Source: Macrostomum hystrix
Lineage: Eukaryota; Animalia; Platyhelminthes
Reading direction: 5' to 3'
Assembly (NCBI GenBank): GCA_950097015.1
Contig: CATNEN010000001.1
Coordinates: 25,606,001 to 25,670,000, forward strand
Length of the DNA stretch: 64,000 nucleotides
Every line of letters starts with the position of its first letter. The first letter of the stretch is position 1. This document shows, piece after piece, positions 1-39,820 of this stretch. Under the pieces are notes generated by a model, which saw only the letters and a list, made by a program, of their open reading frames with translations, was not told the DNA's origin and did not search any database. The position numbers and the translations under genes were made by a program.

Positions 1-284
1 ATTCTGAAGACTTATATTGTTTAGCCAAGTGACACACCCGCCAATTACAATTTACTGCACAGTGAATACACTTTGAATTGCTTAAAAATTGTTGTGCTTC
101 AAATGGCAGAAAAATCTGTACATCAATACTTGTGAGTAGTATGTGATATGCTAATATATTCATTGTTGCCCTGGCAACCAAATTTGCAAAGCTGCTCCAA
201 TCACAGACAGCAATCACGCATATAAACTATTTGTGATTATTGTGTTCTAGTCTTCTGTCTGATCTATTTTTAGATTTATCTCAT

Positions 285-877
285 GTTTTTTTGTCACTCT
301 CTCATATCTTCTGTCACCCTCTCATATCTTCTGTCACTCTCTCATGTCTTTTGTCACTCTCTCATATCTTCTGTCACTCTCTCATATCTTCTGTCACTCT
401 CTCATATCTTCTGTCACTCTCTCATATCTTTTATCACTCTCTCATGTCTTCTGTCACTCTCTCATGTCTTCTGTCACTCTCTCATATCTTTTGTCACTCT
501 CTCATATCTTCTGTCACTCTCTAATTTCTTCTGTCACTCTCTCATATCTTCTGTCACTCTCTAATTTCTTCTGTCACTCTCTCATGTCTTCTATCACCCT
601 CTCATGTCTTCTGTCACTCTCTCATATCTTCTGTCACTCTCTCATATCTTCTGTCACTCTCTCATATCTTCTGTCACTCTCTAATTTCTTCTGTCACTCT
701 CTCATATCTTCTGTCACTCTCTCATATCTTCTGTCACTCTCTCATATCTTCTGTCACTCTCTCATATCTTCTGTGACTCTCATATCTTCTGTCACTCTCT
801 CATATCTTCTGTCAGTCTCTCATATCTTCTGTCACTCTCTCATATCTTCTGTCACTCTCTCATATCTTCTGTCACTC
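285..877. repeat. Minisatellite, 20-bp unit ctctcatatcttctgtcact
   Basis: About 30 tandem units; paralogous array at 23117-24635. Confidence 0.97.
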
Positions 878-2649
878 CCATCGACTTATCCCTTCAGCAA
901 ACACATTGGCAATGAATTAACAGCTCAACAACATAACATAGACGGTGGCAGTGCCAGAGCATTCGGCTGCGTCTTCAGCAACGGTGGAGGAGTCAGGAAG
1001 TGACAAATTTCAATGCGCGATGCACACTACTCGAACGCTTGGTTGTCAGTAGTATCAAACGCATTCGCAGTGCAGAAACGAGACCAGACTCACCGCTGCT
1101 CCATTTCTAGTGAGCACAGACAGGCTGGATTTCACTCCAATGCTGGAGAATTCTCCGAATGGCGACACTGCTCCAGCTGATGAAGCTAGAGAGTCTGTGC
1201 ATAACATGGTTGCGAATTTCATTTCTGAAGGAATTTCATTGATTAGTTTTACCACTTCGGAAAACCAATTAAGTCGACAATCCTTACCATTTAGAGATCT
1301 TCAGCTCAGTGCACCCAAGCTGCAATAAATCTGATGTAACCGGGGGATGGAACAATGCGAGCGCTGGAAATCCCACGGGCTGATCCCAAGGTGGAAGGGG
1401 ATCAGTCAGGCCTTACTCCCCAGTGGCACCCGCCCTAGTGATCGGTTGGTAGTTGCATGGTTTGTGGTCCGATTGCTCCGATTGATGGGCTTTTCGAGGG
1501 AAAATTAAAGGCGGTGACTCAACGAGTAACGTGATTTTATAACCCAGACTGGCCCCTGACTTACAATTCTATGGGGAAAACTGGCAGATAATGCCAGTGA
1601 TCAAAAGAGTAAAATTACACTCCAAGGCCTTGGAGTGTAATTTTAAGTATAGATACTTCAAAATTCAAATGTTAGGGAAAATAAATTTTCGCTGCACAAT
1701 CTACTCAGATGTAACTTACCATTAATGATTTTACTTCGGTTGAAACATTATTTTATTTCTTAATTCGCATTTAAAATATGTCGTGCAGAATAGAACTGGG
1801 AACTGAAAACCCGGTCACGTTTCTCAGTCTAATCAGGTTGGATGGATTCGAACTAAGATTTTGAAATCGTTACTGAGTTTCCAGGGTTCGAAACAGTATA
1901 ACTCTTTAGAGTAGTAGAACGATAAAATGCGTACTAGAAATAGTAATTAATGAGTGAGTACTATCATGAAGTTTTTTTAAAACTAATAAGGAATCGATTG
2001 CAATCGTATATCACAGAAACGAATCCTATAGAATGAACTTTTTTCTTTGAACTTCGGCGTGGCTGTAAGAAAGCCTAACTGCAGTTCAGGAATTGGCGCT
2101 GTTTAGGCTCAACTTCTTTTTCGGCGGCAGACTGAAAAGGGCAGGTCTACCGCTCACTCGCTTAAAGACTTGCTAAACCCTAGGGATAAAGTGCCTTTAA
2201 TTTACAGCTACTCAATAAAATTATAGGCCCTTTTTGTAATTTGCTCAATGCTCAATAAAAATGTTTTTTTGTGTTTGTCACGATGTCTAATACACACCAA
2301 ATATTGCCTTGTATTTTTCCTTAACTTCTTTAAAGTTAGAATTTGAGAGTCTTGACATTCAAGTAAGAGTTTGATTGAGGAGTTGAAATAAGGTTTGGAG
2401 CCAGGGGGCTTGGGGCACAGGGACAGGGAGATTATGATACAGTAGAAAATTTCAATTTTCTGAAATGTAGCAATTTTTTTTCTTTAAAAAAACTCTAAAA
2501 TTTAAATCTGGGATACAGTTTAATTTTTCAAAGAAAATAATCTGAGAGTGATTGTAAAGCTATAGTCAGATATATAGTCAGTTCAGTTAGATATTGAAAT
2601 AAATAGGCCTATTTATTTAATCAGCTATATTATGTCTAATTTCTGAATC

Positions 2650-3100
2650 GGCGATTTTCCTCTTTCGTTCCTTAAATTATTTTTTCGACAGAAACAAGTT
2701 GTGACTACTGAGTAATGTCAGAAAACGACAGTAATGGGATGCTGGGACTTAAATTTTTCTCGGAAAGTTGGATGGAGTTGTTTCCTTAATATTTAACAAT
2801 AAAATTTAACAAGTGAAGACTCAATGCGATAAGTCAAAGCTCATGCGAGAGTGGGAAGGGGAGCAAGGAGCGAGTGCAAGCTGCTGCCTCCGCCACGAAC
2901 CGAGTAGGTGAGTAGTGCCATAGACATGTCTCAGCAGCAACCCCATGTCCTTTCCACTACTGCCACATCATTTTTTCAATAGGCACAATTTCAAATGCTG
3001 CCACGTCACTTTTTCGCGTCTACGCACCGATTCAAATCGAAAAAATAATTTAACGAACGTTAAATATAAATTTAACGTTAAAAATAAGATGAGGAACTCC
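2650..3100. mobile_element. Copy-1-only insertion of about 450 bp with imperfect TIRs
   Basis: Empty site ttctgaatcttatt at about 30103 in copy 2; atc duplicated on both sides; inverted ttaaattattttttcga motifs near both ends. Confidence 0.6.
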
Positions 3101-3477
3101 ATCTTATTAAATGTTTGTTAGTAAATTTCAGTACTTACACTTTGAGTACACTCAGTTTAAAACACTATATGCACCTACAAATAACCACCTAATTTAGTAA
3201 GTTAATATATTTCTTAGTATTGCAATATATCCAGTTCTATATTCTAAATTGTGTGTAGTTTGTCTTTGTTGACCTAATCTAGTAGACAAGAAAAATAAAT
3301 AGCTAAGGTGTCAAACCATTGCTGACTGACTTTCAACATCCTTAAGTTAATATTATCAGGCACATTATAATTATATGTTATATTGCATAGTTTCAACAGT
3401 TAACACTTGAGTTATAATGTAGTTGACCCAGTCTAGTTAGCTATGGAAGTTGTCATAAGTCTATGACAGTTCTGACA

Positions 3478-3932
3478 GGTCTGACTAGTGCCCTGCAGCC
3501 CTGCAGTTCTGACTAGAGCCCTGCAGTTCTGACTAGAGCCTTGCAGTTCTGACTAGAGCCCTGCAGTTCTGACTAGAGCCCTGCAGTTCTGACTAGAGCC
3601 CTGCAGTTCTGACTAGAGCCCTGCAGTTCTGACTAGAGCCTTGCAGTTCTGACTAGAGCCCTGCAGTTCTGACTAGAGCCCTGCAGTTCTGACTAGAGCC
3701 CTGCAGTTCTGACTAGAGCCCTGCAGTTCTGACTAGAGCCCTGCAGTTCTGACTAGAGCCCTGCAGTTCTGACTAGAGCCTTACAGTTCTGACTAGAGCC
3801 CTGCAGTTCTGACTAGAGCCCTGCAGTTCTGACTAAAGCCCTGCAGTTCTGACTAGAGCCCTGCAGTTCTGACTAGAGCCCTGCAGTTCTGACTAGAGCC
3901 CTGCAGTTCTGACTAGTGCCCAGCAGCCCTGC
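3478..3932. repeat. Minisatellite, 20-bp unit gccctgcagttctgactaga
   Basis: About 22 units; paralogue at 31698-32263. Confidence 0.97.
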
Positions 3933-4197
3933 AATAATTAAAAAAATATGTTGTTGTCACCCCTGGGCCAGGAAGAATTATGTTGGCGTCCTTCTGTCAT
4001 GATTTATCCCACCACTTACAATTCCTGGCTGAACCCTAGCCCTTTAAAAATGGGAGTAATTATTTCTACTAGGCATCCAGCATCTTTATTTTGAATCATC
4101 ATTAAAAGAAATGTATTGCTTATTTTCAATGATTCTACTACTATAACGTTCAGAATATAAAATTAGTTTTTTTTAATTATGTTAATATATTCAGCAC

Positions 4198-4508
4198 AAT
4201 TCATCACACATCACATTTCTCACCTACCCTAAAACACTGTACATCATTGAGCCAATCAGAACTCATCACACATCACATTTCTCACCTACCCTAGAACACT
4301 GTACATCGTTGAGCCAATCAGAACTCATCACACATCACATTTCTCACCTACCCTAGAACACTGTACATCGTTGAGCCAATCAGAACTCATCACACTTCAC
4401 ATTTCTCACCTACCCTAGAACACTGTACATCATTGAGCCAATCAGAACTTATCACACATCACATTTCTCACCTACCCTAGAACACTGTACATCAGTGAGC
4501 CAATCAGA
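4198..4508. repeat. Tandem repeat, 61-bp unit containing gagccaatcaga
   Basis: 5 units; 3 units in the paralogue at 32535-32723. Confidence 0.95.
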
Positions 4509-4729
4509 GCGTGGCTTTGCTGATTGGTTGTCCATGGTCAAGACTAGGCCAGTTACCTAGATATAATTATGACAATACAGATGTAGTCAACATAACTAAC
4601 TAGTTAACCAAATAATCATTATTTACCTTCTGGTATAGTTAATTGTAGATCATTTGGTATTGGTGTTGTATTTAATTTGGGAATATGTGACCTAATGAGA
4701 CACAATGGTCAAGCATTCTTGAGATTTAG

Positions 4730-7700
4730 ATTTAGACTGCATCATCTGCACATGCAATTTAGACTGCATCATCTGCACATGCAATTCAGACTACATCATC
4801 TGCACATGCAATTTAGACTGCATCATCTGCACATGCAATTCAGACTGCATCATCTGCACATGCAATTCAGACTACATCATCTGCACATGCAATTTAGACT
4901 GCATCATCTGCACATGCAATTCAGACTGCATCATCTGCACATGCAATTCAGACTGCATCATCTGCACATGCAATTCAGACTGCATCATCTGCACATGCAA
5001 TTTAGACTGCATCATCTGCACATGCAATTTAGACTGCATCATCTGCACATGCAATTCAGACTGCATCATCTGCACATGCAATTCAGACTGCATCATCTGC
5101 ACATGCAATTTAGACTGCATCATCTGCACATGCAATGCAATTCAGACTACATCATCTGCACATGCAATTCAGACTGCATCATCTGCACATGCAATTCCAG
5201 ACTGCATCATCTGCACATGCAATTCAGACTGCATCATCGCACATGCAATTCAGACTACATCATCTGCACATGCATTTAGACTGCATCATCTGCACATGCA
5301 ATTCAGACTGCATCATCTTGCACATGCAATTCAGACTACATCATCTGCACATGCAATTTAGACTGCATCATCTGCACATGCAATTCAGACTACATCATCT
5401 GCACATGCAATTTAGACTGCATCATCTGCACATGCAATTCAGACTGCATCATCTGCACATGCAATTCAGACTACATCATCTGCACATGCAATTTAGACGT
5501 GCATCATCTGCACATGCAATTTAGACTACATCATCTGCACATGCAATCAGACTGCATCATCTGCACATGCAATTCAGACTGCATCATCTGCACATGCAAT
5601 TCAGACTACATCATCTGCACATGCAATTCAGACTGCATCATCTGCACATGCAATTTAGACTACATCATCTGCACATGCAATTCAGACTGCATCATCTGCA
5701 CATGCAATTAGACTACATCATCTGCACATGCAATTCAGACTGCATCATCTGCACATGCAATTTAGACTGCATCATCTGCCATGCAATTCAGACTGCATCA
5801 TCTGCACATGCAATTCAGACTACATCATCTGCACATGCAATTAGACTGCATCATCTGCACATGCAATTCAGCAACTGACATCATCTGCACATGCTAATTC
5901 ATAGACTGCATCATCTGCACATGCAATTCAGACTGCATCATCTGCACATGCAATTCAGACTCAGACTGCATCATCTGCACATGCAATTCAGACTGCATCA
6001 TCTGCACATGCAATTGAGACTGCATCATCTGCACATGCAATTCAGACTGCATCATCTGCACATGCAATTCAGACTACATCATCTGCACATGCAATTTAGA
6101 CTGCATCATCTGCACATGCAATTTAGACTACATCATCTGCACATGCAATTCAGACTGCATCATCTGCACATGCAATTCAGACTGCATCATCTGCACATGC
6201 AATTCAGACTACATCATCTGCACATGCAATTCAGACTGCATCATCTGCACATGCAATTTAGACTACATCATCTGCACATGCAATTCAGACTGCATCATCT
6301 GCACATGCAATTTAGACTACATCATCTGCACATGCAATTCAGACTGCATCATCTGCACATGCAATTTAGACTGCATCATCTGCACATGCAATTCAGACTG
6401 CATCATCTGCACATGCAATTCAGACTACATCATCTGCACATGCAATTTAGACTGCATCATCTGCACATGCAATTCAGACTGCATCATCTGCACATGCAAT
6501 TCAGACTGCATCATCTGCACATGCAATTCAGACTACATCATCTGCACATGCAATTTAGACTGCATCATCTGCACATGCAATTCAGACTACATCATCTGCA
6601 CATGCAATTTAGACTGCATCATCTGCACATGCAATTCAGACTGCATCATCTGCACATGCAATTCAGACTGCATCATCTGCACATGCAATTGAGACTGCAT
6701 CATCTGCACATGCAATTCAGACTGCATCATCTGCACATGCAATTCAGACTACATCATCTGCACATGCAATTTAGACTGCATCATCTGCACATGCAATTTA
6801 GACTGCATCATCTGCACATGCAATTGAGACTGCATCATCTGCACATGCAATTCAGACTGCATCATCTGCACATGCAATTCAGACTGCATCATCTGCACAT
6901 GCAATTTAGACTGCATCATCTGCACATGCAATTCAGACTACATCATCTGCACATGCAATTCAGACTGCATCATCTGCACATGCAATTCAGACTACATCAT
7001 CTGCACATGCAATTTAGACTGCATCATCTGCACATGCAATTCAGACTGCATCATCTGCACATGCAATTCAGACTACATCATCTGCACATGCAATTTAGAC
7101 TGCATCATCTGCACATGCAATTCAGACTGCATCATCTGCACATGCAATTCAGACTGCATCATCTGCACATGCAATTCAGACTGCATCATCTGCACATGCA
7201 ATTCAGACTACATCATCTGCACATGCAATTTAGACTGCATCATCTGCACATGCAATTTAGACTACATCATCTGCACATGCAATTCAGACTGCATCATCTG
7301 CACATGCAATTCAGACTGCATCATCTGCACATGCAATTCAGACTACATCATCTGCACATGCAATTCAGACTGCATCATCTGCACATGCAATTCAGACTGC
7401 ATCATCTGCACATGCAATTCAGACTGCATCATCTGCACATGCAATTCAGACTACATCATCTGCACATGCAATTTAGACTACATCACCTGCACATGCAATT
7501 CAGACTGCATCATCTGCACATGCAATTCAGACTGCATCATCTGCACATGCAATTTAGACTGCATCATCTGCACATGCAATTTAGACTGCATCATCTGCAC
7601 ATGCAATTTAGACTGCATCATCTGCACATGCAATTTAGACTACATCATCTGCACATGCAATTTAGACTGCATCATCTGCACATGCAATTTAGACTACATC

Positions 7701-9287
7701 ATCTGCACATGCAATTCAGACTGCATCATCTGCACATGCAATTTAGACTGCATCATCTGCACATGCAATTTAGACTACATCATCTGCACATGCAATTCAG
7801 ACTGCATCATCTGCACATGCAATTTAGACTACATCATCTGCACATGCAATTCAGACTGCATCATCTGCACATGCAATTTAGACTGCATCATCTGCACATG
7901 CAATTCAGACTGCATCATCTGCACATGCAATTCAGACTACATCATCTGCACATGCAATTTAGACTGCATCATCTGCACATGCAATTCAGACTACATCATC
8001 TGCACATGCAATTTAGACTGCATCATCTGCACATGCAATTCAGACTACATCATCTGCACATGCAATTTAGACTGCATCATCTGCACATGCAATTCAGACT
8101 GCATCATCTGCACATGCAATTCAGACTGCATCATCTGCACATGCAATTGAGACTGCATCATCTGCACATGCAATTCAGACTGCATCATCTGCACATGCAA
8201 TTCAGACTACATCACCTGCACATGCAATTCAGACTGCATCATCTGCACATGCAATTCAGACTGCATCATCTGCACATGCAATTCAGACTGCATCATCTGC
8301 ACATGCAATTCAGACTGCATCATCTGCACATGCAATTCAGACTGCATCATCTGCACATGCAATTTAGACTGCATCATCTGCACATGCAATTCAGACTACA
8401 TCATCTGCACATGCAATTCAGACTACATCATCTGCACATGCAATTTAGACTGCATCATCTGCACATGCAATTCAGACTGCATCATCTGCACATGCAATTC
8501 AGACTACATCATCTGCACATGCAATTTAGACTGCATCATCTGCACATGCAATTTAGACTGCATCATCTGCACATGCAATTCAGACTGCATCATCTGCACA
8601 TGCAATTCAGACTGCATCATCTGCACATGCAATTCAGACTGCATCATCTGCACATGCAATTCAGACTGCATCATCTGCACATGCAATTTAGACTACATCA
8701 TCTGCACATGCAATTCAGACTGCATCATCTGCACATGCAATTCAGACTGCATCATCTGCACATGCAATTCAGACTACATCATCTGCACATGCAATTCAGA
8801 CTGCATCATCTGCACATGCAATTCAGACTGCATCATCTGCACATGCAATTCAGACTGCATCATCTGCACATGCAATTCAGACTACATCATCTGCACATGC
8901 AATTTAGACTACATCACCTGCACATGCAATTCAGACTGCATCATCTGCACATGCAATTCAGACTGCATCATCTGCACATGCAATTTAGACTGCATCATCT
9001 GCACATGCAATTTAGACTGCATCATCTGCACATGCAATTCAGACTGCATCATCTGCACATGCAATTCAGACTGCATCATCTGCACATGCAATTTAGACTA
9101 CATCATCTGCACATGCAATTCAGACTGCATCATCTGCACATGCAATTCAGACTGCATCATCTGCACATGCAATTTAGACTACATCATCTGCACATGCAAT
9201 TCAGACTGCATCATCTGCACATGCAATTTAGACTGCATCATCTGCACATGCAATTTAGACTACATCATCTGCACATGCAATTTAGAT
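4730..9287. repeat. Minisatellite, 27-bp unit ttYagactRcatcatctgcacatgcaa
   Basis: About 168 units; indel-rich subregion at about 5130-5960. Confidence 0.98.
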
Positions 9288-10584
9288 ATTTACACAATTA
9301 ACATGCAAATACATTAACATATACATTTAGATTTACAATTTACACATCACTCAACTGATATGTATTAGGTCTCTGAAATCATTCAACTTTTCTTTCTTAA
9401 ATTCTCGTGATTGTGATGATGCTTCTGTTAATGCTGTTTCTTAACTTTTGCACATGGTAGACATGTCTAGGTGCCCATTGTCTAGATTGGTCATTGCTTA
9501 GAGTAATATGATTGCTTTTCTAGTCCTAAATTCTATAACCATTTTTTGCTATTGCTTAAGTTTATTTGTGTTGATTGAGTTTTAACATCCTCAAGTTAAT
9601 ATTATCTGGCACATTATCTAATATATTGCAAGTTCTTACAGGCCTAAAACATGTATAAGGATAGACTTGTCCTAACCTTGGCCATAGCAGGGGTGTAGTT
9701 ATCAGGGAATACAGGGACATTGTGACGAGTGTTTAGTTAGTTGTTGTGTAGCGGATTTGGGTTGGGATTTAAATATATTGCTTTTTAAGTTTGTTTGTTT
9801 GACTAGCTGTGAGGTGGTAACGGGTGGGGACGGCGATGGCAACACTCAAAACATGCTTATTATTATAACAACAGAAAGTACTAATTGGGTGTTGAATAAA
9901 TTTGGTGCAATAATACCCAAGTGTACACTTAGGAAATAAGCCAATCAGAATATAGGGTCAAGATCAGAGCCAAGTTCTACTTTCTAGTCACAGAATAAAA
10001 TGATTATTGCGCAAAAAGTGAATGAAGAGTGAAGTGCGAAAACCAAAATAGTGTACCATACATAATATTCCGGATACTGTATTGTTATAATAAGAAAAGT
10101 AAGAAAGTAAGTATTTACAATAATTATACGGCTACGATAAACAAACACTGCCACAATATATTCTCCCATTTGTCTGCTTAAACAGTTGCCATTATATAAG
10201 TTAAAGTTTACTGATTTTTATCGCCGTATTTTCATGTTTCTTTGACAATATTTAGCATGTTTTACAAATGTAGAGTATGAATTAATGTACTAATGTACTA
10301 AACTAGAGTAAGTATGTATTCGCTAATAATGCAGTTATCATTTATATTTAAATATTTCCCACAGCTGCAGCATGCGCTCCACTCTACTGCCCTGTGAGTA
10401 GCCACCAAGGAGCACGATTCGAGAGCACTCCAAGGAGAGAGCGGCAGGCACTGACCAGCCCGTTGCCATGGCAACAATTTCAGGCATAAAAGCTGTCTCC
10501 GAGCTGCAGCGGGCCAGAGGTGGAATCGCTGTGTGCTCACCTTGAGCAGTGCTCAATCTAACTCCTCACTCTAATCCCAGTCCC

Positions 10585-12412
10585 ATGGCTGCTGGAGGCC
10601 CAAGCGATGACCAGGTGAGGGACTCAGAGCCAATCACAGTGCTTTTTCTATTGCTCAAATATTGACTGAACCTGCCCACTGACTGTTGCATTGCCGACTC
10701 TCAGCTGCAGAAACTCGCCCAGCTGACCATCCAAGGCGACTTTGGCCAGGTGCACCAACTGGCGACGCGACAGCTGGTGGCAAGCAGAGATGGCAGGCGC
10801 AGCGGAAGGACCATCTTGATGGTAGTTGCCGACGCTCTAGATACTCCCGTGGATGCTGAGAAGTGCGTATTGTACTTATTTGAGTTGGGCGCGGATCCGG
10901 CAGCGCGTGACCGGGCCGGCGACACGGCAGCGCACGTGGCAGCCAGACGGAACCACCTGCGGCTGCTGGCGCTGCTGCCGTTCGATGCGAAGTGGCTGCA
11001 GAACGAGCGAGGCGCGACACCGCTGATGGAGGCAGCTCAAGCCGGCAGCTGGGAAACCGCGAAACAACTGCTGCATCTGCTGAGGCAGAGGAGGTATAAT
11101 GAGTATAAGGAGAGAGGCAACTCGAAGAGGGATCAGCTGCTCGGCCTGCAGGACAGCGAAGGTCAAACCGCGCTCGACCTGGCGAGGCAGGGCGGCCACT
11201 CAGAGCTGGCCAGCTACATTGAGCGGTGAGTGATCAGTTCGCTGCTGTGCCCGATTCGCAGCATTGCAGCTGGGGTGGCCTGAGCATTGGTCTCAGCCCA
11301 GCCAATCAGAGCCAGTCAGCTGAAGCCGCTGTTGTTTGCATGGCCCAATGGGATTTCATTTCGGTGCAGTCGCTTTTGCATTTCTAGTTTAGCAACTCGA
11401 GCTAACTAATAAATCGAGTGGAGATCAGTCAAATGGGAACTTGTCAATCTGGGAAAGCATTAGAGATGCAGGGGAGTTTTGGTGCATGCAACTGAATCCC
11501 CATGTGTTTGTGTCTCCCACAGCCAGTTTCCCTTCCCCAATATTCTGATTGGCTGAGAATTCACTTCCCTTAACTTGGAGATTCGCAAATAGGCAATCAG
11601 CAAATCTCCAATGGCCAGTGCACAGATTTGTGTGCCACATTGGCAGCACTGAGAATTGGCATTTCTCATGCCGCAGTGCTTTCTCGACCCCAACACTTTG
11701 CTGATGCAGCGAATTTGAGGCTGAGTAAAAATGAGCTTGTCTGAAACTGCTGCCTGTTTGTGTGCGATGAGAATTTCGCATTTGATTTCTTCTGCTTTGC
11801 AGGGAGATGCGGCTGCGAGTGGATGAAGATGGCAGGATCTTCGGCCTGACAGACTCGGTGAGTGGCATCTGGGGTGCCGATGTGGGTGCAGATGAGCAGC
11901 TGTGCTCAAATTCTCCACTCGCCTTTGCAGGAGGAGGCAGAGCGAGAGGAACTGGAGCGGCTGGCCGAGGCGGGCGACTCGGCGGGGCTGCGGCGAGCAG
12001 CGACCCGCAGCAACTGCGACCTGCCGGACAGGGGGGGTCATACAGCGTTAATGAGGGCAGCTGAGAACATCCAGTGCTCTGACGGGGCTCTGTGGCAGCA
12101 TCTGCCGCAGCTCGGGGACCCCACCTGTGCTGCTGTGGGTGCTTTCAGTTCCCTGCACTTTGCAGCCGAGGCTGGCAATTCTGCCGCAGTCTCCCAGCTG
12201 CTCCATGCCGGAGCCTCCGCCAACGCCAGGGGTTGGAGGGAATCCACGGCCCTCATGTGGGCAGCCAGGGCGCCCCCCGCAACCGCCGCCGCAGTCGGTC
12301 GGGCTCTGCTGGCCGCAGGGTCGGACTGGAGCCTGAAGGACGAGGATGGCATGACTGCGCTGGACTGGGCCACAGTGGAGGGAAAGAGCGAACTGGCCGA
12401 GCTGCTGCGTGG
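10585..12412 (+). CDS. Ankyrin-repeat protein, copy 1 (N-terminal exons of a probable ankyrin-kinase gene)
   Basis: Phase-consistent GT-AG exons 10585-10614 (MAAGGPSDDQ), 10705-11225, 11803-11857, 11931-12412. Ankyrin motifs GRTILMVVA, GDTAAHVAA, GATPLMEAA, GQTALDLAR, GHTALMRAA, AFSSLHFAA, ESTALMWAA, GMTALDWAT. Ends in a donor (gg|gtgagt); candidate next exons 12546-12585 and 12647-~12797. Confidence 0.88.
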
Positions 12413-13589
12413 GTGAGTTGCCATGGCGACTGAGAATGTCTCTCATCTTGCATTATCGCACTGGGTGGGTGCAGGTCGCAGTGTTTCACTGATCAGAGTC
12501 AAAGTGGGTTGCAATTTTTAGCCAAAATATTTTCTGTCCAATCAGAGTTTTGCCCGCCTCTGCCACTCAAGCAGTTTGCAGTGCCGTAAATAATAGCATT
12601 AATATTATCAGTGGTAATAAAGCTTTCCATTTGCTGCTTTTTATAGGTGAAAATGCGCACTGCGTACCGTGCGGGCCGCTCTCACAAAGCCCAATTTTCT
12701 GTGCGCAATTCAGAGTTTGTGCAGTCCGAAGCAACTTCTGCTTTCGACGCTGTGGAAATTGGGGCTTGTGAAACGGCTGAGCATCGCTTCTGGAGGGGTG
12801 GGCGTGCGGGCGCTCTCCCATTGGCTGGCGGCCTCCCCGCCCCGTCTCTTCCATTGGCTGGCGGCCTCCGCCAGTCAGTTTTAGCGCCTCTGCGCCATTT
12901 CAGCAGAGCTGTTGCGCTGTTGCGCTGCTATTGCTGGAAAACTGACACAGCTGAGCTAAAATGCACAGTTTAGTTACAGTTTGCTGCTACTTGAACTGTT
13001 AATTGGCATTGGCATTAATTACTGCAGTGCCTTCAGCAAACACAAGCAAAGGACAGGACACACTCAGGACAAACACAAGTCAGCAATCAGACGCAGACTA
13101 AAGTGCATTGAATGAAAAACAGTCTGGCTGACTGTGGCTCACTTGGCGCAAGTGACGGCCTACAGGGTGGCTGTTAAGAAGAGGCCACCCACAGAGTGGG
13201 GGTCGAGGGCCGCACAGGCAAATGAAAATGTGCGGAGAGGCCCCCAGCGAAGGCAGGGACTGTGGAGTGGGGTGGGTGGCCCCGCCTCTCTGCCCCCTCG
13301 GCACCTCGTCACCTCGCAGCCAGCGAGTGGCAATTCTGCCCATTCCGCTGACTCCTGAGCACACACGCACACAGATGCCTTCAATAAAGTTGACAGCTAT
13401 CCAAATACTTTTGCGGAGTCTGCCTCGGTTTCCTCACCTTCTTCAGTGATTTGCCACTGGCCAAGTGAGCCTCACTGACCGAAAACTGTCAGTTGAAGAG
13501 CGGTAGAAGGGGAGTGGGATATTTTTGTATTCACTTTTCCCCACCGCATGCCAGGGCATGAATCTGACATTCTCCTTCGGTAGCATGTT

Positions 13590-13872
13590 TTGAGACTGGG
13601 GAGATGAGACTGGGGAGATGAGACAGGGAGATGAGACAGGGGAGATGAGACAGGGAGATGAGACAGGGAGATGAGACAGGGGAGATGAGACAGGGAGATG
13701 AGACAGGGGAGATGAGATAGGGGAGATGAGACGGGAGTTGAGATGGGGGGGAAATGAGACAGAGGAGATGAGACAGGGGAGAGATGAGACAGAGGAGATG
13801 AGACAGGGGAGATGAAACAGGGAGATGAGACAGGGGAGATGAGACGGGAGATGAGACAGGGGAGATGAGACA
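13590..13872. repeat. Purine-rich repeat (gg)ggagatgagaca
   Basis: 13-14 bp units; shorter paralogue at 38358-38457. Confidence 0.93.
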
Positions 13873-14169
13873 CATTATGCCCTCCCTGCTGCTAGGTGCA
13901 GTTGAGGGTCAGCTGACCTATTAGCCATGGCCATGCTGAGCCATGCACTTTCTTCAATGAAATGTGCTATGAAATGCATTGTTCTCATTGCTAGCAGAAT
14001 CTAATTGATACACATACAACTCATGTCGCTTATTCAGCGGCAAGGCTGGTAGGAGCCGGAAGTGTCAAGTCAGTGTTGATATTATATTATATTATGATTG
14101 AGTTTTTGAATGCTATTATACTAATTACTCGTTGACAATCGCCATTTCCACTAACCAATGCCCATGCAG

Positions 14170-15243
14170 GTACGAAGGCAAGGAGTACTTTGAAAAGCCG
14201 TGAGTACATACATTGCTGCTGCTTTTGTTGCATTTCTGCTCTCTGCAATCTGCAGCTCTTCTGCCCACCTGCCGCTTGCTTTCATCAGCCACTAAAAATT
14301 CCTCAGGTTTCTCATTGAGCGCTGGGAATCCTTCAAACTCATCGGCAGGGGAGGCTTCGGCGATGTCCACGAAGTGCTCACGGACACGGGCATCAGGTGC
14401 GCTGCGAAGACTCTCAGACTGCCAGTGCAGCTCGGTGATCAGCTGGACCCTTCAAAGAAAACGGAGATCGACAAGTTTATTGAGGGCGAGAAGAACCTGT
14501 GCCAGCTGCGGCACCCCAACATCGTCAGCTTCTTGCACATCGCTCAGCCTGAGTATGCGACAGTTGTTGTGTTCATGGAGCTGCTGGATGGCTGCAGCCT
14601 GGAGAGATTTCTCGACTCCAAGCCGCTGGGCGAAGAAGCCATTCGACAGTTCAGCGAGCAGGTGAGATTTGAGCAGCCTGCTCATGAGTGATGCAGTGAG
14701 TTGACTTTTTAGCGTCAGCTGACACCAGTTCCTCAACCCACCCACCTGCAGATCTGCAGCGCGCTGCACTACCTGCACAGCCGACAGCCGCCTGTGATCC
14801 ACAGAGACATCAACTGCAGCAACATCATTGTGCTCGGTGACAACAGGCGAGTCAAGCTGATCGACTTCGGCCTGTCAATCAAGCTGGAGCAGTCTGTCAG
14901 CCACCTCATAGCCTCCACTGCCACACCGAAGGGCACTCTGAACTTCATGGCGCCAGAGCTGCTGGCACCAGACGATGAAGGCAACCCGCGGTACAGCAGA
15001 GAGTCGGACATCTGGGCATTCGGCTGCTCAGTCTTCCAGATGGCCACGGGAGGCAGGCCCTACTCAAACGCCAGAAACTACTTCCACGTGGCTCAGAAGC
15101 TGAAGAAGGACGGAGCCCCCGCCCTGCCTGACGGCTGCTCGGCGGAGCTGCGGGACTTCTACAGCCGCTGCACGAAGCGAGACCGCAAGGAGAGAAAGTC
15201 AGCAGAGGAGCTGTGCCTTCACGGCTTCCTGCTGCGACGGTGA
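14170..15243 (+). CDS. Ser/Thr protein kinase domain (STE/MAP3K-like), copy 1; probably the C-terminal part of the ankyrin gene
   Basis: Exons 14170-14199 (YEGKEYFEKP), 14307-14661, 14752-15243 join in phase. Motifs IGRGGFGDV, CAAK, alphaC Glu (GEKNL), HPNIV, HRDINCSN, DFG, GTLNFMAPE, DIWAFGC. No separate start exon seen; exons linking it to the ankyrin part are unresolved. Confidence 0.9.
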
Positions 15244-15410
15244 CCAAGCTGGCAGACAGACTGGCTGACACTGATAGACCCCCTCACATTTGTAAACTTC
15301 TGAACTTACTTCAGCAGTGTAATTATTTGCTGTTTAATTTTTCCCAACGGATTTAATGCTCATTCATGAGCTGCTCCAATCCCTACTCGCTATGGTTTAA
15401 TACTGGATAA

Positions 15411-15516
15411 CCTGTGACCATCCTGTATGACTCTTGCATGACCATCCTGCATGACTCTTGTATGACCATCCTGCATGACTCTTGCATGACCATCCTGCAT
15501 GACTCTTGTATGACCA
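15411..15516. repeat. 24-bp tandem repeat atgaccatcctgcatgactcttgY
   Basis: About 4 units; identical copy at 39988-40093. Confidence 0.9.
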
Positions 15517-16994
15517 GCTCGTTTGGCTTTAATGACCAGTGCTCACATGTCCAGCTGCTCACATGTATGACAGATTCTTGCAGTTTCGCATTGTCCATCA
15601 GTTTAATTTGTCAGTGAAACACGAAACTGATGTGTTTATTACTACAGTTACTATTAGTAAACAGCCATAATATACCCAGCTTACTGTGCCAAGACAATTT
15701 TGAAACTTTTTCATTCCTCTTTGCTTTGTTGCATTCTCCGGCAGGGCAGGGGGTGGGCGGCTGCCTGGAGCCAAGCACAATGGGACAGAAGGTGCGGGTC
15801 AGCCTGAGCAGCTGCTCAGGGCTCGGTGAGACAGAAGAGCAACAATTATCAGATGAGCACTCTCTGTACTCACTCTGAGCACCTACACTCACGGTCCTCA
15901 CCTCATTGAACGAGAGACCGCAAAATTTATTATATTTCCTATCAATCGCCAGATATCAATGAAATGAGTCTATTTCTCAAAGCAGGTATTCACTGCCAGG
16001 ATGGCATTGTGCGGGGCGGCCCTCTCCCTCTACCCCACCTTGCCCTGTCTCATACGATGCAGATTTCATTCACGAGCCACGAATCCTGAGCAGTTGAGGT
16101 GGTTGGCCAGGGACATTGGAATGGGGCTACTGTCACGCAGCGTGACCATGCAGGTCATGAAATGCCTGGCATTCCATTCTCTTCCAAAAGACGGCCTGGC
16201 AGCCTTTGCCGCTGCGCTCCATCCACTGTGAGGGCGGGGCAGCTCGTCCTCTCCAGCCGCACCTCCCCCTCCTGCCCTCCCAGCCTTCTGTTGTTCAGAA
16301 AGCACAGAGAGCAGCGCAGTGCCCACCCAGCCCTGCACAGCTCGGAGATGGAGCTGGGGAGGCTGAGAGCCGGTGAGACAACTGGCTTCCATTCTCAGAA
16401 ACACCTGAGGCTGAGTTACTCTCTCCTCACTGTCTCGGCCGCAGATGCAGAAGAGAGGCTGGGCAGTGGAGTCACGTGACCGCACAGAACTCGCACCTCA
16501 TTGGCTGAGCCGTGCACTGAGACTGCGGCCTCCACTCTCTCCCAGGACCGACCGAAGTTTCTCTTGGAATCGGTTGGCCTTGCAGCGCGATTGAAAGGCA
16601 GATTATGTCCCAACTGACTACTGTGAGTAGGACTAATGCGCTGGGCAGAATTTCTGAGAAATCCAGGCCTTGGGGAATCCCGAGATTGCGGAGAATCCGA
16701 AAGGTTGCGACTATTTTTTGCTTTAGCCAACACTTGAACTTCTGCTATAACTTCTGCACAATGATCAGCCCGTCTCCAACATCCCCAGACTTTTTTGCTG
16801 GCATGGAAAGCTGCTGTTTTAATTATACAGTCACCATGGAAACCAAACACAGCTGTGACTGCACTACTGTGGCTGCGAGTATTTGAAATCTCTTACCATT
16901 GATATCACAATATTCTCTGCAGGTTAACCTGCCAGAGCAGTTGATCTGCCTTGCACTTTTAAATCTTTCAGGCACTTCTAGAACTCGTATCGAG

Positions 16995-18180
16995 TTGGGG
17001 GATTGGGGATCGATTTGGGGGAATGGGGATCGATTTGGGGGAATGGGGATCGATTTGGGGAATGGGGATCGAGTTGTGGGGATTGTGATATGGGATTGCA
17101 GTGTGGTATTGGGATGTGGGATTGGGATTACAGTGTGGTATTGGGATGTGGGATTGGGATTACAGTGAGGTATTGGGATGTGGGTTGTGGGATTACAGTG
17201 AGGCATCGGGATTTGGGATTGGGATTACAGTGAGGTATCAGGATGTAGGATTACAGTGAGGTATTGGGATGTGGGATTGCAGTGGTATTGGGATGTGGGA
17301 TTGGGATTACAGTGAGGTATCGTGATTTGAGATTGGGATTACAGTGAGGCATCGGGATTTGGGATTGGGATTACAGTGAGGTATTGGGATGTGGGATTGC
17401 AGTGAGGTATTGGGATGTGGGATTGCAGTGAGGTATTGGGATGTGGGATTACAGTGTGGTATTGGGATGTGGGATTACAGTGTGGTATTGGGATGTGGGA
17501 TTACAGTGAGGTATTGGGATGTGGGATTGAGTCAGCTGTGAGAATGGGGAGTCACCTGAGAGAATGGGGAGCCAGCTGTGAGAATGGGGAGTCAGCTGTG
17601 AGAATGGGGAGTCAGCTGAGAGAATGGGGAGTCAGCTGAGAGAATGGGGAGTCAGCTGTGAGAATAGGGAGTCAGCTGTGAGAATAGGGAGTCAGCTGTG
17701 AGAATAGGGAGTCAGCTGAGAGAATAGGGAGTCAGCTGTGAGAATGGGGAGTCAGCTGAGAGAATGGGGAGTCAGCTGAGAGAATGGGGAGTCAGCTGTG
17801 AGAATAGGGAGTCAGCTGTGAGAATAGGGAGTCAGCTGTGAGAATAGGGAGTCAGCTGAGAGAATAGGGAGTCAGCTGTGAGAATGGGGAGTCAGCTGAG
17901 AGAATAGGGAGTCAGCTGTGAGAATGGGGAGTCAGCTGTGAGAATGGGGAGTCAGCTGTGAGAATGGGGAGCCAGCTGTGAGAATGGGGAGTCAGCTGAG
18001 AGAATAGGGAGTCAGCTGTGAGAATGGGGAGTCAGTTGAGAGAATAGGGAGTCAGCTGTGAGAATAGGGAGACAGCTGAGAGAATAGGGAGTCAGCTGAG
18101 AGAATAGGGAGACAGCTGAGAGAATAGGGAGTCAGCTGTGAGAATGGGGAGTCAGCTGTGAGAATGGGGAGTCAGCTGAG
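16995..18180. repeat. Compound minisatellite (20-bp tggggatcgatttgggggaa; 26-bp gggattacagtgaggtattgggatgt; 20-bp gagtcagctgtgagaatggg)
   Basis: Three abutting arrays; apparently identical copy at 41572-42757. Confidence 0.95.
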
Positions 18181-18781
18181 TAAGGATCTGGTTGAGGCTA
18201 TGGAGATCGAAAAAAGAGTAAACATTTTCTGAAATTTGATAACCAATTCAGGCTGACAATTTGAAAGATCTTCATCCCGTGAGACCTGCAGTACTCAAAG
18301 CTCACTAGCTACTTATTTTTTTGAAGTCTCTAATTCGACTCCTGAGTCCTGGAGCATGAAATTCATTTTGAAGCAGCTCAGATTTTGGCCCTGCTCACCC
18401 TGAGCAGTGCTCACTGTTGTCTCCAGTTTGCACTGCAGGGCAGCTGGCTGAGGGAGGGCCGATGGACTCAGAATAAGGACCTCTAAAAATAGCACCTGCA
18501 CTCTGTGAGCAGAGTCGAAAACCCGATGAGATGCTCAGAATTCTAGTTGAATGGAATCGGCCATGGCAGAGAGAATTTTAGCAGCACAAATGCCTGATTC
18601 TGCAGCCTGGGCTCGAACCCACAGCCTGCGGAGTCCCAGCCGATTCTCCCAGCTGCCGTCACTCTGCAGGACATTTATAATTATGATTTATGATCCCAGC
18701 TGGCTCACCATGGGAGCGGGCAGAGGACATTGCAGCAGGAGGCGCCCACGACTGCAAGAGACAGAAGAGCGAGAGAATGAA

Positions 18782-19113
18782 GGGATTAGCATGTCCTACA
18801 AGGATTAGCATGTCCTACAAGGATTAGCATGTCCTACAAGGATTAGCATGTCTTAAAGGGATTAGCATGTCCTACAAGGATTAGCATGTCCTACAAGGAT
18901 TAGCATGTCCTACAAGGATTAGCATGTCTTAAAGGGATTAGCATGTCCTACAAGGATTAGCATGTCCTACAAGGATTAGCATGTCTTAAAGGGATTAGCA
19001 TGTCCTACAAGGATTAGCATGTCCTACAAGGATTAGCATGTCCTACAAGGATTAGCATGTCTTAAAGGGATTAGCATGTCCTACAAGGATTAGCATGTCC
19101 TACAAGGATTAGC
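18782..19113. repeat. Minisatellite, 19-bp unit aaggattagcatgtcctac
   Basis: About 17 homogeneous units; degenerate paralogue at 43507-44181. Confidence 0.95.
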
Positions 19114-19975
19114 AAGTATTTGTCCTTTAGTAAATTAGAATTCATTAAAGATTTGGGGAAGTGTTTTGGCTTAACGAAACGAATTATTTTATTTTTTATA
19201 TGGCGCTATATAATAGACATACAATTCAGACTGAACGGACAATATTTAAGCAGTTTTTTTCCGAGAAGAGAGATCTAAACTAATGCCTACTACTTAAACC
19301 GATTGTGGTCTGTGGAGGTTTCGTCTTTCAGCTTTTTGGTGAATCTGACTGTTAAACTGAACCTTCCATGCACAGTATAATCCAGTGATATAACTTATAT
19401 GTTTTAATATAAAAAAACAACAGTAAGAGTGCTTCATCTCTACTGTGCTATTAATACGAACATAATTACTTAATAGAGTTTTTGTAATCTCCAGCTGGTA
19501 TTTTTAATAAATCTTTATCAGAATTGCTAAGTTGTCACAATAATTCATTATGCAAAGACAATTTAGAAAGAATAACCCTACACAGAATTTTATTTGCTGA
19601 AATGGTCACATGTGATAAAATTAAACACCTGTCTTAATTTCTGTATTTTTAATGCTTAATGCTAATGGTTCTTTCAACTGAACGATCCACTTAAAAAATA
19701 AATATGTGGTAATTTTTTAAACGATTTTGCTAGTGCATTTAAACAATTATGCCTTACACAATGAATTTGTTTCCAAGAAATTATTATAAGTAGTGTAAGT
19801 TGTAAAATATTTGAAAGCTGGTAATGTGTCTGTGTATATTTCTTAGAATTATATATTATTTTTGTTTATCTTGCTACAAAATGATTGTCTACTTGTACAT
19901 TAGTTATTTATTGAATATTATAACAACTTTGGTAGCCCTAGTAACCCTAGAGCTGTCTCACCTGGGATCTTCCAG

Positions 19976-32263: not shown

Positions 32264-32945
32264 ACAATAATTAAAAAAATGTTGTTGTCACCCTTGGGCC
32301 AGGAAGAATTATGTTGGCGTCCTTCTGTCATGATTTATCCCACCACTTACAATTCCTGGCTGAACCCTAGCCCTTTAAAAATGGGAGTAATAATTTCTAC
32401 TAAGAGTAGGCATCTAACATCTCTACATTGAAGCATCATTAAAAGAAATTTATATGCTTATTTTCTATTATTCTAGTACTATAACAGTCGAAATAAAAAA
32501 TTAGTTTTTTTAATCTGTAAATATATTCAGCACAATTCATCACACATCCACATTTCTCACCTACCCTAGAACACTGTACATCAGTGAGCCAATCAGAACT
32601 CATCACACAACCACATTTCTCACCTACCCTAGAACACTGTACATCGTTGAGCCAATCAGAACTAATCACCCAACCACATTTCTCACCTACCCTAGAACAC
32701 TGTACATCAGTGAGCCAATCAGAGCGTGGCTTTGCTGATTGGTTGTCCATGGTCAAGACTAGGCCAGTTACCTAGATATAATTATGACAATACAGATGTA
32801 GTCAACATAACTAACTAGTTAACCAACTAATCATTATTTACCTTCTGGTATAGTTAATTGTAGACCATTTGGTATTGGTGTTGTATTTAATTTGGGAATA
32901 TGTGACCTAATGAGACACAATGGTCAAGCATTCTTGAGATTTAGA

Positions 32946-35060: not shown

Positions 35061-36887
35061 ATGGCTGCTGGAGGCCCAAGCGATGACCAGGTGAGGGACT
35101 CAGAGCCAATCACAGTGCTCTTTCTATTGCTCAAATATTGACTGAACCTGCCCACTGACTGTTGCATTGCCGACTCTCAGCTGCAGAGACTCGCCCAGCT
35201 GACCATCCAGGGCGACTTTGGCCAGGTGCGCCAACTGGCGACGCGACAGCTGGTGGCAAGCACGGATGGCAGCGGAAGAACCATCTTGATGCTGGTGGCC
35301 GACGCTCCAGATACTCCCGTGAAGGCTGAGAAATGCGTATTGTACTTATTTGAGTTGGACGCGGATCCGGGAGCGCGTGATGGGGCGGGTGACACGGCAG
35401 CGCACGTGGCAGCCAGACGAAATCACCTGCGGCTGCTGGCGCTGCTGCCGTTCGATGCGAAGTGGCTGCAGAACGAGCGAGGCGCGACACCGCTGATGGA
35501 GGCAGCTCGGGCCGGCAGCTGGCGAACCGCGAAACACCTGCTGCATCTGCTGAGGCAGTGGAGGTATAATAAGTATAAGGAGCATGGCAACTCGAAGAGG
35601 GATCAGCTGCTCGGCCTGCAGGACAGCGAAGGTCGAACCGCGCTCGACCTGGCGAGGCAGGGCGGCCACTCAGAGCTGGCCAGCTACATTGAGCGGTGAG
35701 TGATCAGTTCGCTGCTGTGCCCGATTCGCAGCATTGCAGCTGGGGTGGCCTGAGCATTGGTCTCAGCCCAGCCAATCAGAGCCAGTCAGCTGAAGCCGCT
35801 GTTGTTTGCATGGCCCAATGGGATTTCATTTCGGTGCAGTCGCTTTTGCATTTCTAGTTTAGCAACTCGAGCTAACTAATAAATCGATTGGAGATCAGTC
35901 AAATGGGAACTTGTCAATCTGGGAAAGCACTAGAGATCCAGGGGAATTTTGTGCATGCAACTGAATTCCCCATTTGTTTATGTCTCCCACGGGCAGTTTC
36001 CCTTCCCCAATATTCTGATTGGCTGAGATTTCACTTCCCTTAACTTGGAGATTCGCAAATAGGCAACCAGCAAATCTCCAATGGCCAGTGCACAGATTTG
36101 TGTGTGCCACATTGGCAGCACTGAGAACTGGCATTTCTCATGCCGCAGTGCTTTCTCGACCCCAACACTTTGCTGATGCAGCGAATTTGAGGCTGAGTAA
36201 AAATGAGCTTGTCTGAAACTGCGGCTTGTTTGTGTGCGATGAGCATTTCGCATTTGATTTCTTCTGCTTTGCAGGGAGATGCGGCTGCGAGTGGGTGATG
36301 AATATGGCTGGATCTCCGGCCTGACAGACTCGGTGAGTGGCATCTGGGGTGCCGATGTGGGTGCAGATGAGCAGCTGTGCTCGAATTCTCCACTCGCCTT
36401 TGCAGGAGGAGGCAGAGCGAAAGGAACTGAAGAGGCTGGCCAGGGCGGGCGACTCGGCGGGGCTGCGGCGAGCGGCGACCCGCGGCAACTGCGACTTGCC
36501 GAACAGTGGGGGTCAGACAGCGTTAATGCATGCAGCTCGGAACATCCAGTGCTCTGACCGGGCTCTGTGGCAGCATCTGCTGCAGGTCGGGGACCCCACC
36601 TGTGCTGGTGTGGATGCTCACAGTTGCCTGCACAGGGCAGCCGGGGCTGGCAATTCTGCCGCAGTCTCCCAGCTGCTCCATGCCGGAGCCTCCGCCAACG
36701 CCAGGGATTGGGAGGAATCCACGCCCCTCATGTGGGCAGCCTGGGTGCCCCCCGTCACCGCCGCCGCAGTCGGTCGGGCTCTGCTGGCCGCAGGGTCGGA
36801 CTGGAGCCTGAAGTACGAAGATGGCATGACTGCGCTGGATTTGGCCACAGAGGAGGGAAATAGCGAACTGGCCGAGCTGCTGCGTGG
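35061..36887 (+). CDS. Ankyrin-repeat protein, copy 2
   Basis: Exons 35061-35090, 35181-35695, 36275-36332, 36406-36887 with the same phases as copy 1 and only in-frame indels (-6 nt, +3 nt); 8 ankyrin motifs. Confidence 0.88.
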
Positions 36888-38749: not shown

Positions 38750-39820
38750 GTACGAAGCCAAGGAGTACTTTGAAAAGCCGTGAGTACATACATTGCTGCT
38801 GCTTTTGTTGCATTTCTGCTCTCTGCAATCTGCAGCTCTTCTGCCCACCTGCCGCTTGCTTTCATCAGCCACTTAAACTTCCTCAGGTTGCTTATTGAAC
38901 GTTGGGATTCCGTCAAGCTCATCGGCAGGGGAGGCTTCGGCGATGTCCACGAAGTGCTCACGGACACGGGCATCAGGTGCGCTGCGAAGACTCTCAGACT
39001 GCCAGTGCAGCTCGGCGACCTGGAGCCTTCAAAGAGAAAGGAGATCGACAAGTTTATTGAGGGCGAGAAGAACCTGTGCCAGCTGCGGCACCCCAACATC
39101 GTCAGCTTCTTGCACATCGCTCAGCCTGAGTATGCGACAGTTGTTGTGTTCATGGAGCTGCTGGATGGCTGCAGCCTGGAGAGATTTCTCGACTCCAAGC
39201 CGCTGGACGAAGAAGCCATTCGACAGTTCAGCGAGCAGGTGAGATTTGAGCAGCCTGCTCATGAGTGATGCAGTGAGTTGACTTTTTAGCGTCAGCCGAC
39301 ACCAGTTCCTCAACCCACCCACCTGCAGATCTGCAGCGCGCTGCACTACCTGCACAGCCGACAGCCGCCTGTGATCCACAGAGACATCAACTGCAGCAAC
39401 ATCATTGTGCTCGGTGACTACAGGCGAGTCAAGCTGATCGACTTCGGCCTGTCAATCAAGCTGGAGCAGTCTGTCAGCCACCTCACAGCCTCCACTGCCA
39501 CACCGAAGGGCACTCTGAACTTCATGGCGCCAGAGCTGCTGGCACCAGACGATGAAGGCAACCCGCGGTACAGCAGAGAGTCGGACATCTGGGCGTTCGG
39601 CTGCTCAGTCTTCCAGATGGCCACGGGAGGCAGGCCCTACTCAAACGCCAGACACTATTACCACGTGGCTCAGAAGCTGGAGAAGGACGGAGCCCCCGCC
39701 CTGCCTGACGGCTGCTCGGCGGAGCTGCGGGACTTCTACAGCCGCTGCACGAAGCGAGACCGCAAGGAGAGAAAGTCAGCAGAGGAGCTGTGCCTTCACG
39801 GCTTCCTGCTGCGACGGTGA
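38750..39820 (+). CDS. Ser/Thr protein kinase domain, copy 2
   Basis: Exons 38750-38779, 38887-39238, 39329-39820. Same motifs as copy 1 (GRGGFG, AAK, HRDINCSN, DFG, APE); one-codon in-frame deletion. Confidence 0.9.

Follow-up and report, generated by a model that had tools for sequence, protein, structure and literature searches.

The question raised by this locus is what drives the divergence of two neighbouring ankyrin-kinase genes of the flatworm Macrostomum hystrix, in which one ankyrin exon has changed far more than the introns beside it. The two genes, termed A and B, lie in a 64-kb window (contig CATNEN010000001.1, positions 25,606,001 to 25,670,000), which is the whole stretch of DNA that was analysed and is eukaryotic and minisatellite-rich. 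Self-BLAST and an aligned divergence profile revealed a segmental duplication in this window, some 20 kb long and arranged in tandem, with copy A at approximately 1-19114 and copy B at approximately 22846-43897, each copy corresponding to one gene on the + strand. Joining the exons of gene A in a local frame check gave a seven-exon open reading frame (ORF) of 654 amino acids without internal stop, and gene B was found to have the same seven exons, encoding 652 amino acids and likewise free of internal stops; the introns of both genes are all of the GT..AG type. According to Pfam matches, exons 2 and 4 encode ankyrin repeats, and a protein kinase domain is split between exons 6 and 7. Analysis of exon 4 revealed diversifying selection on a gene family, with the selected sites clustered on a functional surface.

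Exon 4 of gene A (11931-12412) and that of gene B (36406-36887) differ at 42 nucleotides, amounting to 28 amino-acid changes and 5 silent codons, which exactly reproduces the codon count of a first-pass annotation that had been made from the letters alone. That annotation had also drawn attention to codons with two or three base changes, of which there are seven, including AGG/CAT, TTT/AGG, GAG/CGG and TTC/CAC; to the near identity of the adjacent intron, where 11226-11410 and 35696-35880 were aligned with 0 mismatches over 185 bases; and to some 12 differences over about 280 residues of the kinase domains, where 13 of 281 were found. The peptides quoted in it are present as written, and its assignment of the two domain types is borne out by the Ank_2 and Pkinase matches in Pfam. 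Overall divergence between A and B was 1.1-3.0% in the introns, 8.7% in exon 4, 6.2% in exon 2 and 1.4-3.7% in the kinase exons. For the A/B pair alone, the nonsynonymous divergence (dN) was 0.107 and the synonymous divergence (dS) 0.054, giving a ratio of 2.0 that is statistically borderline (Fisher p 0.05-0.10). The statistical case therefore rests on the 15-member family described in the following.

A six-frame search of the worm's own genome with exon 4 returned 35 matches, comprising at least 15 intact close paralogues (78-88% amino-acid identity), which all map to 22.1-26.9 Mb of a single contig. In the alignment of the 15 paralogues, invariant stretches alternate with columns that hold as many as eight different residues, and the number of repeats is constant, except for an 8-codon insertion in paralogue L011 and single-codon insertions or deletions. 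The ratio dN/dS exceeded 1 in 104 of the 105 pairs, with a median of 2.3. The mean pairwise pN/pS was 2.07; bootstrapping over codons put its 95% interval at 1.45-3.00, and none of 5000 replicates was at or below 1. A one-ratio model (GY+F3X4 in IQ-TREE) gave a dN/dS (omega) of 2.77 for the whole exon, and omega = 1 was rejected with twice the log-likelihood difference (2dlnL) at 45.9 (p 1e-11); our own codon-likelihood code matched the log-likelihood of IQ-TREE to the last digit. Positive selection had been proposed in the first-pass annotation, together with a comparison of the site models M7 and M8 on the genome paralogues as its check. This comparison gave a 2dlnL of 311 (314 for M1a against M2a), with 21-24% of the codons at an omega of about 13, and the proposal was upheld by it, by the whole-exon omega and by the tree-free bootstrap, which excludes 1.

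Within exon 4, the selected codons had a pN of 0.41 and the framework codons a pN/pS of 0.63. Ankyrin block 1 (exon 2, 13 genes) gave an omega of 0.48 and the kinase (7 genes) an omega of 0.45, both significantly below 1. The downstream intron, measured on BLAST-aligned flanks, showed 2.2% mean divergence among paralogues, as against 9.4% for exon 4. In exon 3, which is 18, 19 or 23 codons long among the paralogues, a pN/pS of 3.99 was obtained at a DxxGx hairpin.

Under M8, 29 codons of exon 4 had a posterior above 0.95, and these include 18 of the 28 A/B differences. The repeat register was taken from a HMMER alignment of exon 4 to the consensus designed ankyrin repeat protein (DARPin) NI3C (PDB 2xee), and the mapping of sites to a surface rests on this alignment together with secondary structure. 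The 26 selected sites that fall in the four repeats fill 23 of the 28 cells formed by positions 1, 2, 3, 5, 10, 13 and 14 in four repeats. Sixteen of the 26 are at positions 2, 3, 5, 13 and 14 (hypergeometric p 2e-10), describing a DARPin-like variable surface; positions 1 and 10 are selected in addition, and position 33 is not. DARPin libraries, as reportedly built by Binz et al. in 2003, were randomised at positions 2, 3, 5, 13, 14 and 33.

An AlphaFold model computed with 19 family sequences (mean predicted local distance difference test score 93.9) showed four helix pairs. The selected sites were located in the turns before the first helices and in or just after these helices, with two in the N-terminal cap helix, and none was found in the second, outer helices (residues 52-61, 84-92, 116-128 and 153-159). 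This is the arrangement that the first-pass annotation had described from A and B, with changes on a DARPin-like face of beta-turns and first helices and invariant second helices; in the family, 23 of the 26 in-repeat sites are at the seven positions listed above. The commonest residues at selected sites are W, R, E and D, W making up 12% there and 2% in the framework. Since the hairpin of exon 3 varies at equivalent positions, the variable surface probably spans exons 3 and 4.

The coordinates of both genes are collected in Table 1. Pfam and homology searches were run exon by exon, with exons 2, 4, 6 and 7 entered as ORF spans. Exons 2 and 4 belong to the ankyrin repeats (Pfam CL0465) by their Ank_2 matches and by matches to solved ankyrins and DARPins with E values up to 6e-25, and exons 6 and 7 to the protein kinases (PF00069), with Pkinase scores of 36.6 and 118.6 bits, respectively, at a cut-off of 31.7. 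In NCBIfam, the exons matched nothing beyond bacterial kinase and ankyrin models, all of them below threshold. By sequence, A and B are both intact seven-exon ORFs. There is no hydrophobic N-terminus, so that the protein is presumably cytosolic.

Table 1. Exons of genes A and B and extent of duplication copy A, as positions in the window.
Feature	Position	Strand	Evidence
Duplication copy A	1..19114	no strand	self-BLAST, aligned divergence profile
Gene A exon 1, coding part	10585..10614	+	start codon, MAAGGPSDDQ; joint 10611>10702 in RNA-like contigs; ORF check
Gene A exon 2, ankyrin block 1, moderately variable (omega 0.48)	10705..11225	+	Ank_2 E 1.7e-16; joint 11224>11802, loose ends at 11226
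Gene A exon 3, 18-codon linker, hypervariable DxxGx hairpin	11803..11857	+	joints 11224>11802, 11856>11930; family alignment
Gene A exon 4, two N-terminal cap helices and four ankyrin repeats, 29 selected codons	11931..12412	+	Ank_2 E 9e-14; codon models
Gene A exon 5, 30-base mini-exon, phase 2 in and out, ankyrin-kinase link	14170..14199	+	joint 14199>14307 GT..AG; phase fits exon 4
Gene A exon 6, kinase N-lobe (GRGGFG loop, AAK lysine)	14307..14661	+	Pfam Pkinase; joints 14199>14307, 14657>14748
Gene A exon 7, kinase C-lobe (HRDINCSN, DFG, APE) and stop	14752..15243	+	Pfam Pkinase E 4e-34
Gene B exon 1, coding part	35061..35090	+	
Gene B exon 2, ankyrin block 1	35181..35695	+	
Gene B exon 3, linker with hypervariable hairpin, one codon more than in A	36275..36332	+	
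Gene B exon 4, hypervariable ankyrin exon, paralogue of 11931-12412	36406..36887	+	
Gene B exon 5, mini-exon	38750..38779	+	
Gene B exon 6, kinase N-lobe	38887..39238	+	
Gene B exon 7, kinase C-lobe and stop	39329..39820	+	

Transcription was followed in RNA-like short contigs from four public runs, none of which is on record as RNA. In these contigs, GT..AG joints were present for five of the six gene A introns (Table 1), the transcribed 5' part of gene A begins near 10364, and coverage was far deeper on exons than on introns, the family being spliced and exon-enriched. A satellite in intron 4 (13286-13867, GAGACAGGG-type, 14/27-base) reached a contig depth in the thousands in the RNA-like runs, compared with about 100 for exons, which presumably marks it as a dispersed repeat, either transcribed or abundant at other sites.

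The donor site of exon 4, GG|GTGAGT (12411-12416 in A and 36886-36891 in B), reads GGG TGA in frame. Owing to this in-frame stop, retention of the intron would give an ankyrin-only protein ending in ...LLRG. The stop is at the same place in the distant paralogues L025-L030, and ankyrin-only proteins of 385 amino acids are present in Macrostomum lignano.

From the selection pattern, its location on the fold and the intact genes, the reading we favour, with a probability of roughly 0.6, is that of a germline repertoire of binding specificities, akin to natural DARPins, in which each paralogue would recognise a different, fast-changing intracellular protein ligand and binding would be passed on to an effector. 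The family would be recently expanded and restricted to Macrostomum, with cytosolic proteins in which ankyrin block 1 is joined by a hairpin linker to ankyrin block 2, and this in turn to a C-terminal effector. In exons 3 and 4, which encode the hairpin and ankyrin block 2, strong diversifying selection acts on the side that faces the groove, covering beta-turns and first helices. The effector would be an STE-like kinase in A, B and most copies, a caspase in the M. lignano relatives, and missing from ankyrin-only copies or isoforms. We infer that the ligands are non-self or conflict-related, such as proteins of a pathogen, a parasite or a selfish element or mating-derived proteins, and that ligand binding regulates the effector; the innate or allorecognition sensor proposed in the first-pass annotation is a candidate role. 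The similarity of the copies outside the selected sites is likely due to recent duplication and gene conversion in non-coding sequence and to purifying selection in coding sequence.

Several findings weigh against this reading. The four-gamete test was failed by 38% of the informative site pairs, with a Hudson-Kaplan minimum of 19 events in 480 bases; a single tree is consequently a poor model for the family, and the likelihood ratios and individual site calls are inflated. In addition, the site models were run with branch lengths fixed at their M0 estimates and one scale factor. Omega above 1 is itself independent of any tree, because the pairwise dN/dS values and the bootstrap are tree-free. 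At the transcript level, the joint 12412>14170, which connects the ankyrin part to the kinase part, was absent from the joints listed in the RNA-like contigs, and its support consists of the reading phase and M. lignano proteins, of which P0006 runs from "...SELAELLRG" into the kinase and P0008 from "...LLRR" into "YEGRSYF", resembling exon 5. The best-covered RNA contig over exon 4 had 1 mismatch to paralogue L003 and 5 to gene A and so fits L003 and not gene A, which makes expression of A and B themselves putative.

The remaining points of this kind concern the kinase and the decay of individual copies. The kinase has a Gly-rich loop (GRGGFG), the beta-3 Lys (AAK) and the HRD, DFG and APE motifs. 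Its catalytic loop (14803-14826 in gene A) reads HRDINCSN, with Asn in place of the Lys of HRDxKxxN (HRDVKPSN in MAP2K7), and this Asn is kept across the family and in the M. lignano protein A0A1I8GU44. Judged by the missing Lys, the kinase may have little activity or be a pseudokinase. A pN/pS of 0.67 for the kinase is relaxed, and single copies are damaged: paralogue p23928 has a one-base frameshift in the exon of the kinase Gly-loop, m26161 and m26147 have non-AG acceptors, and exons of L017 and L019 are broken. The kinase is under net purifying selection (omega 0.45), and the conserved kinase output postulated in the first-pass annotation is called into question by the relaxed pN/pS, the missing Lys, the broken kinases and other paralogues that apparently have a caspase or no effector. 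In p23928 (23926800-23934900; L033, L045), a caspase second-half exon follows the kinase at a distance of 1.7 kb, which looks like a decayed arrangement of ankyrin (ANK) repeats, kinase and caspase.

The effectors of the wider family were assessed from relatives. The closest database proteins were all from M. lignano, where A0A1I8GU44 (671 amino acids) has the same ANK-ANK-kinase build. It is 55% identical over 374 amino acids to the ANK-ANK-caspase protein Mlig009377, with the identity ending exactly at the exon 4 boundary. In the M. hystrix genome, two-exon caspase domains are found on the same strand 5.7 and 10.3 kb downstream in p25473 and p25442, as a putative fusion in each case, and the acceptors of these caspase exons fit the phase-2 donor. 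Among the more distant exon-4-like exons, L020-L025 and L030 have a kinase downstream and L026-L029 a caspase, again as putative fusions. Genome-wide, 74 caspase matches and 48 related kinase matches were counted. A and B themselves both end in a kinase and are not ANK-caspases. What emerges is a modular pairing of the ankyrin module with kinase or caspase, the caspase form being shown in M. lignano proteins only.

That six close paralogues might all be ankyrin-only was considered and discarded, since p25513 has a kinase 8.2 kb downstream and p25473 and p25442 have the caspase exons just mentioned. Paralogue p25571 does appear ankyrin-only, given that 1.5 kb separate its exon 4 from the start of the next gene. 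It lies head to tail with p25575 at a distance of 3.4 kb (25569945-25579944; L039), and this first member of the pair leaves no space for either a kinase or a caspase and has 8 extra codons inserted in repeat 3.

Such ankyrin-only forms, namely p25571, the product predicted from the exon 4 donor stop and the 385-residue proteins of M. lignano, fit an alternative in which the ankyrin face co-evolves with fast-evolving endogenous partners, as part of an internal conflict or as a regulator. The partners would be the worm's own expanded families of caspases and kinases, for which the ankyrin proteins would serve as natural DARPin-like inhibitors or adaptors, selfish elements, or sperm and seminal proteins in this hypodermically inseminating hermaphrodite. 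The large numbers of caspase and kinase matches in the genome speak in its favour, as do the caspase-binding DARPins cited in a study of platyhelminth caspases (PMC11463336). Nothing direct speaks against it. The selection pattern fits external and internal ligands alike, and fusion to an effector suits a receptor better than a free inhibitor. We regard this alternative as unlikely, at something like one chance in five.

A second alternative attributes the variation to mutation or recombination, through short-tract conversion, fragmentary donors or a raised local mutation rate, with selection being only permissive. The incompatible site pairs and the Hudson-Kaplan minimum reported above would be expected from it, as would the recurrence of the same residues in different combinations, the two or three base changes in 7 of the 33 changed A/B codons, and the partial copies L017 and L019 together with two fragments. 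Synonymous divergence likewise counts in its favour, being higher in exons (0.035-0.097) than in introns (0.011-0.030), even in exons under purifying selection; it was 0.035 at the amino-acid-invariant codons of exon 4 and 0.085 in exon 2. This synonymous excess could reflect stronger homogenisation of introns, conversion bias, older exon lineages, CpG-rich coding sequence or an artefact of the counting method. Shuffling alone, however, cannot lift dN above dS, and the tree-free interval of pN/pS excludes 1. The changes, moreover, are limited to individual codons that recur with the period of the structure and are separated by invariant ones, and no donor cassette array was found. A test of the pairwise homoplasy index type was not significant (p 0.14), that is, incompatibility was detected without distance dependence, and this fits recurrent substitution as well as conversion. 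The incompatibility is either very frequent short-tract exchange or recurrent substitution at the same codons. An origin by mutation or recombination is accordingly considered improbable.

Relaxed constraint, that is, a decaying amplified family in which a tolerant ankyrin surface drifts towards pseudogenes, would account for a pN/pS of 0.66-0.68 in the kinase and ankyrin block 1, which is above that of typical conserved kinases, for the frameshifts, lost acceptors and missing exons of several copies and for the missing Lys of the catalytic loop. Drift, however, predicts an omega near 1, and the values are 2.8 for the exon as a whole and about 13 for one codon in five. The framework codons are constrained (0.63), the reading frame is open in all 15 exons and undamaged throughout A and B, and the family is transcribed and spliced as judged from the RNA-like contigs, which makes this explanation very improbable.

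Directly 3' of the kinase stop, 15244-18782 and 39821-43410 were aligned with 0 mismatches over 3539 bases, an identity of 3.5 kb that points to gene conversion in the very recent past or to a collapse in the assembly. An assembly artefact, with A and B or many of the copies being alleles or collapsed or expanded repeats, would also suit a region full of minisatellites, but it is scarcely credible given that 24.5 kb separate A from B, that their satellites differ in length and their sequences by 1-9% outside the identical stretch, that fifteen distinct exon sequences extend over 5 Mb of one contig, and that one RNA contig is specific to a third paralogue. As regards the minisatellites, a 27-base unit is present in 168 copies upstream of gene A (4730-9286) and in 30 copies upstream of gene B (32945-33761); other large arrays in the window have units of 54 bases (48 copies, 25785-28382), 20 bases (116 copies, 56467-58791) and 35 bases (52 copies, 62192-64000).

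If the favoured reading of a germline repertoire of binding specificities is correct, an ankyrin groove lacking a NOD module and coupled to a kinase or caspase would be a new receptor architecture in the innate immunity or the conflict biology of animals. At the same time it would be a natural counterpart of DARPins, showing which positions evolution randomises, including 1 and 10. Macrostomum is tractable by RNA interference, transgenesis and inbred lines, so that ligands and function are testable. More tentatively, and at less than even odds, we suggest that the family may represent an undescribed class of animal intracellular receptors, a NOD-less DARPin-like repertoire that is exon-shuffled via phase-2 junctions to a kinase or caspase and converts non-self recognition into signalling or cell death. 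Literature searches returned no description of this ankyrin-kinase family, and searches on the M. lignano gene identifiers gave no match. A paper on gene duplication in flatworms lists the ankyrin and kinase superfamilies only as frequent classes of in-paralogues.

Among known systems, the kinase part is closest to the STE group. The best matches of the C-lobe among solved kinases were MAP2K7 (E 1e-23), followed by WNK, MAP2K6, ASK1 and PAK1 (to E 1e-18), and HRD, DFG and APE are common to the family and to MAP2K7, MAP2K6, WNK1/3, ASK1 and PAK1. The match is distant, however, and the family differs in its N-terminal ankyrin module; the likeness is drawn from matches and not from a phylogeny.

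Ankyrin repeats and a kinase are combined in one polypeptide in ILK, TNNI3K, RIPK4/ANKK1 and DAPK, with the ankyrin part N-terminal in ILK and TNNI3K. These are conserved single-copy genes, and their kinases belong to the TKL and CAMK groups. We know of no report of a hypervariable ankyrin face in any of them, and the searches made here indicate no orthology.

A bipartite ankyrin module homologous to that of A and B occurs in the ANK-caspases of M. lignano, such as Mlig009377, from which A and B differ by ending in a kinase. Platyhelminth ANK-caspases have been called specific to parasitic flatworms, and one M. lignano caspase was described with a kinase-like pro-domain; hypervariability of or selection on the ankyrin part was not reported in that study (PMC11463336).

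With DARPins (NI3C, PDB 2xee), the family has in common an invariant scaffold and variation at positions 2, 3, 5, 13 and 14. In contrast to DARPins, it is natural, varies at positions 1 and 10 in every repeat and is not selected at position 33, has insertions in repeats 1 and 3, and carries the binding domain fused to enzymes.

Diversified receptors built on repeat scaffolds are represented by the leucine-rich repeats of plant and animal NOD-like receptors (NLRs), by the variable lymphocyte receptors of lampreys and by the ANK, TPR and WD repeats of fungal NLRs. The family described here would work as a diversified repeat receptor, yet it is not a member of the NLRs. No NACHT or NB-ARC domain indicative of NLR/STAND proteins was detected by Pfam in exons 2, 4, 6 and 7 of gene A or in the full-length M. 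lignano protein P0006, where all matches were to ankyrin and kinase families; three short exons (10, 18 and 10 codons) are outside the Pfam scan, and nothing sizeable is left unassigned in the 654-residue model. High internal conservation as in fungal repeats (above 85% repeat identity, with repeat-number polymorphism) is likewise not a feature of exon 4, in which the repeats are unlike each other and their number is fixed. The closest described phenomenon is nevertheless that of the fungal NLRs of Podospora, in which diversifying selection acts on the concave ankyrin face, formed by the inner helix and the beta-hairpin loop (PMC4986451; Dyrka et al. 2014). Fungal NLRs are also expanded, with fast turnover, signs of recombination or concerted evolution, and effector swaps. 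What sets the present family apart from them is its animal host and its C-terminal kinase or caspase effector.

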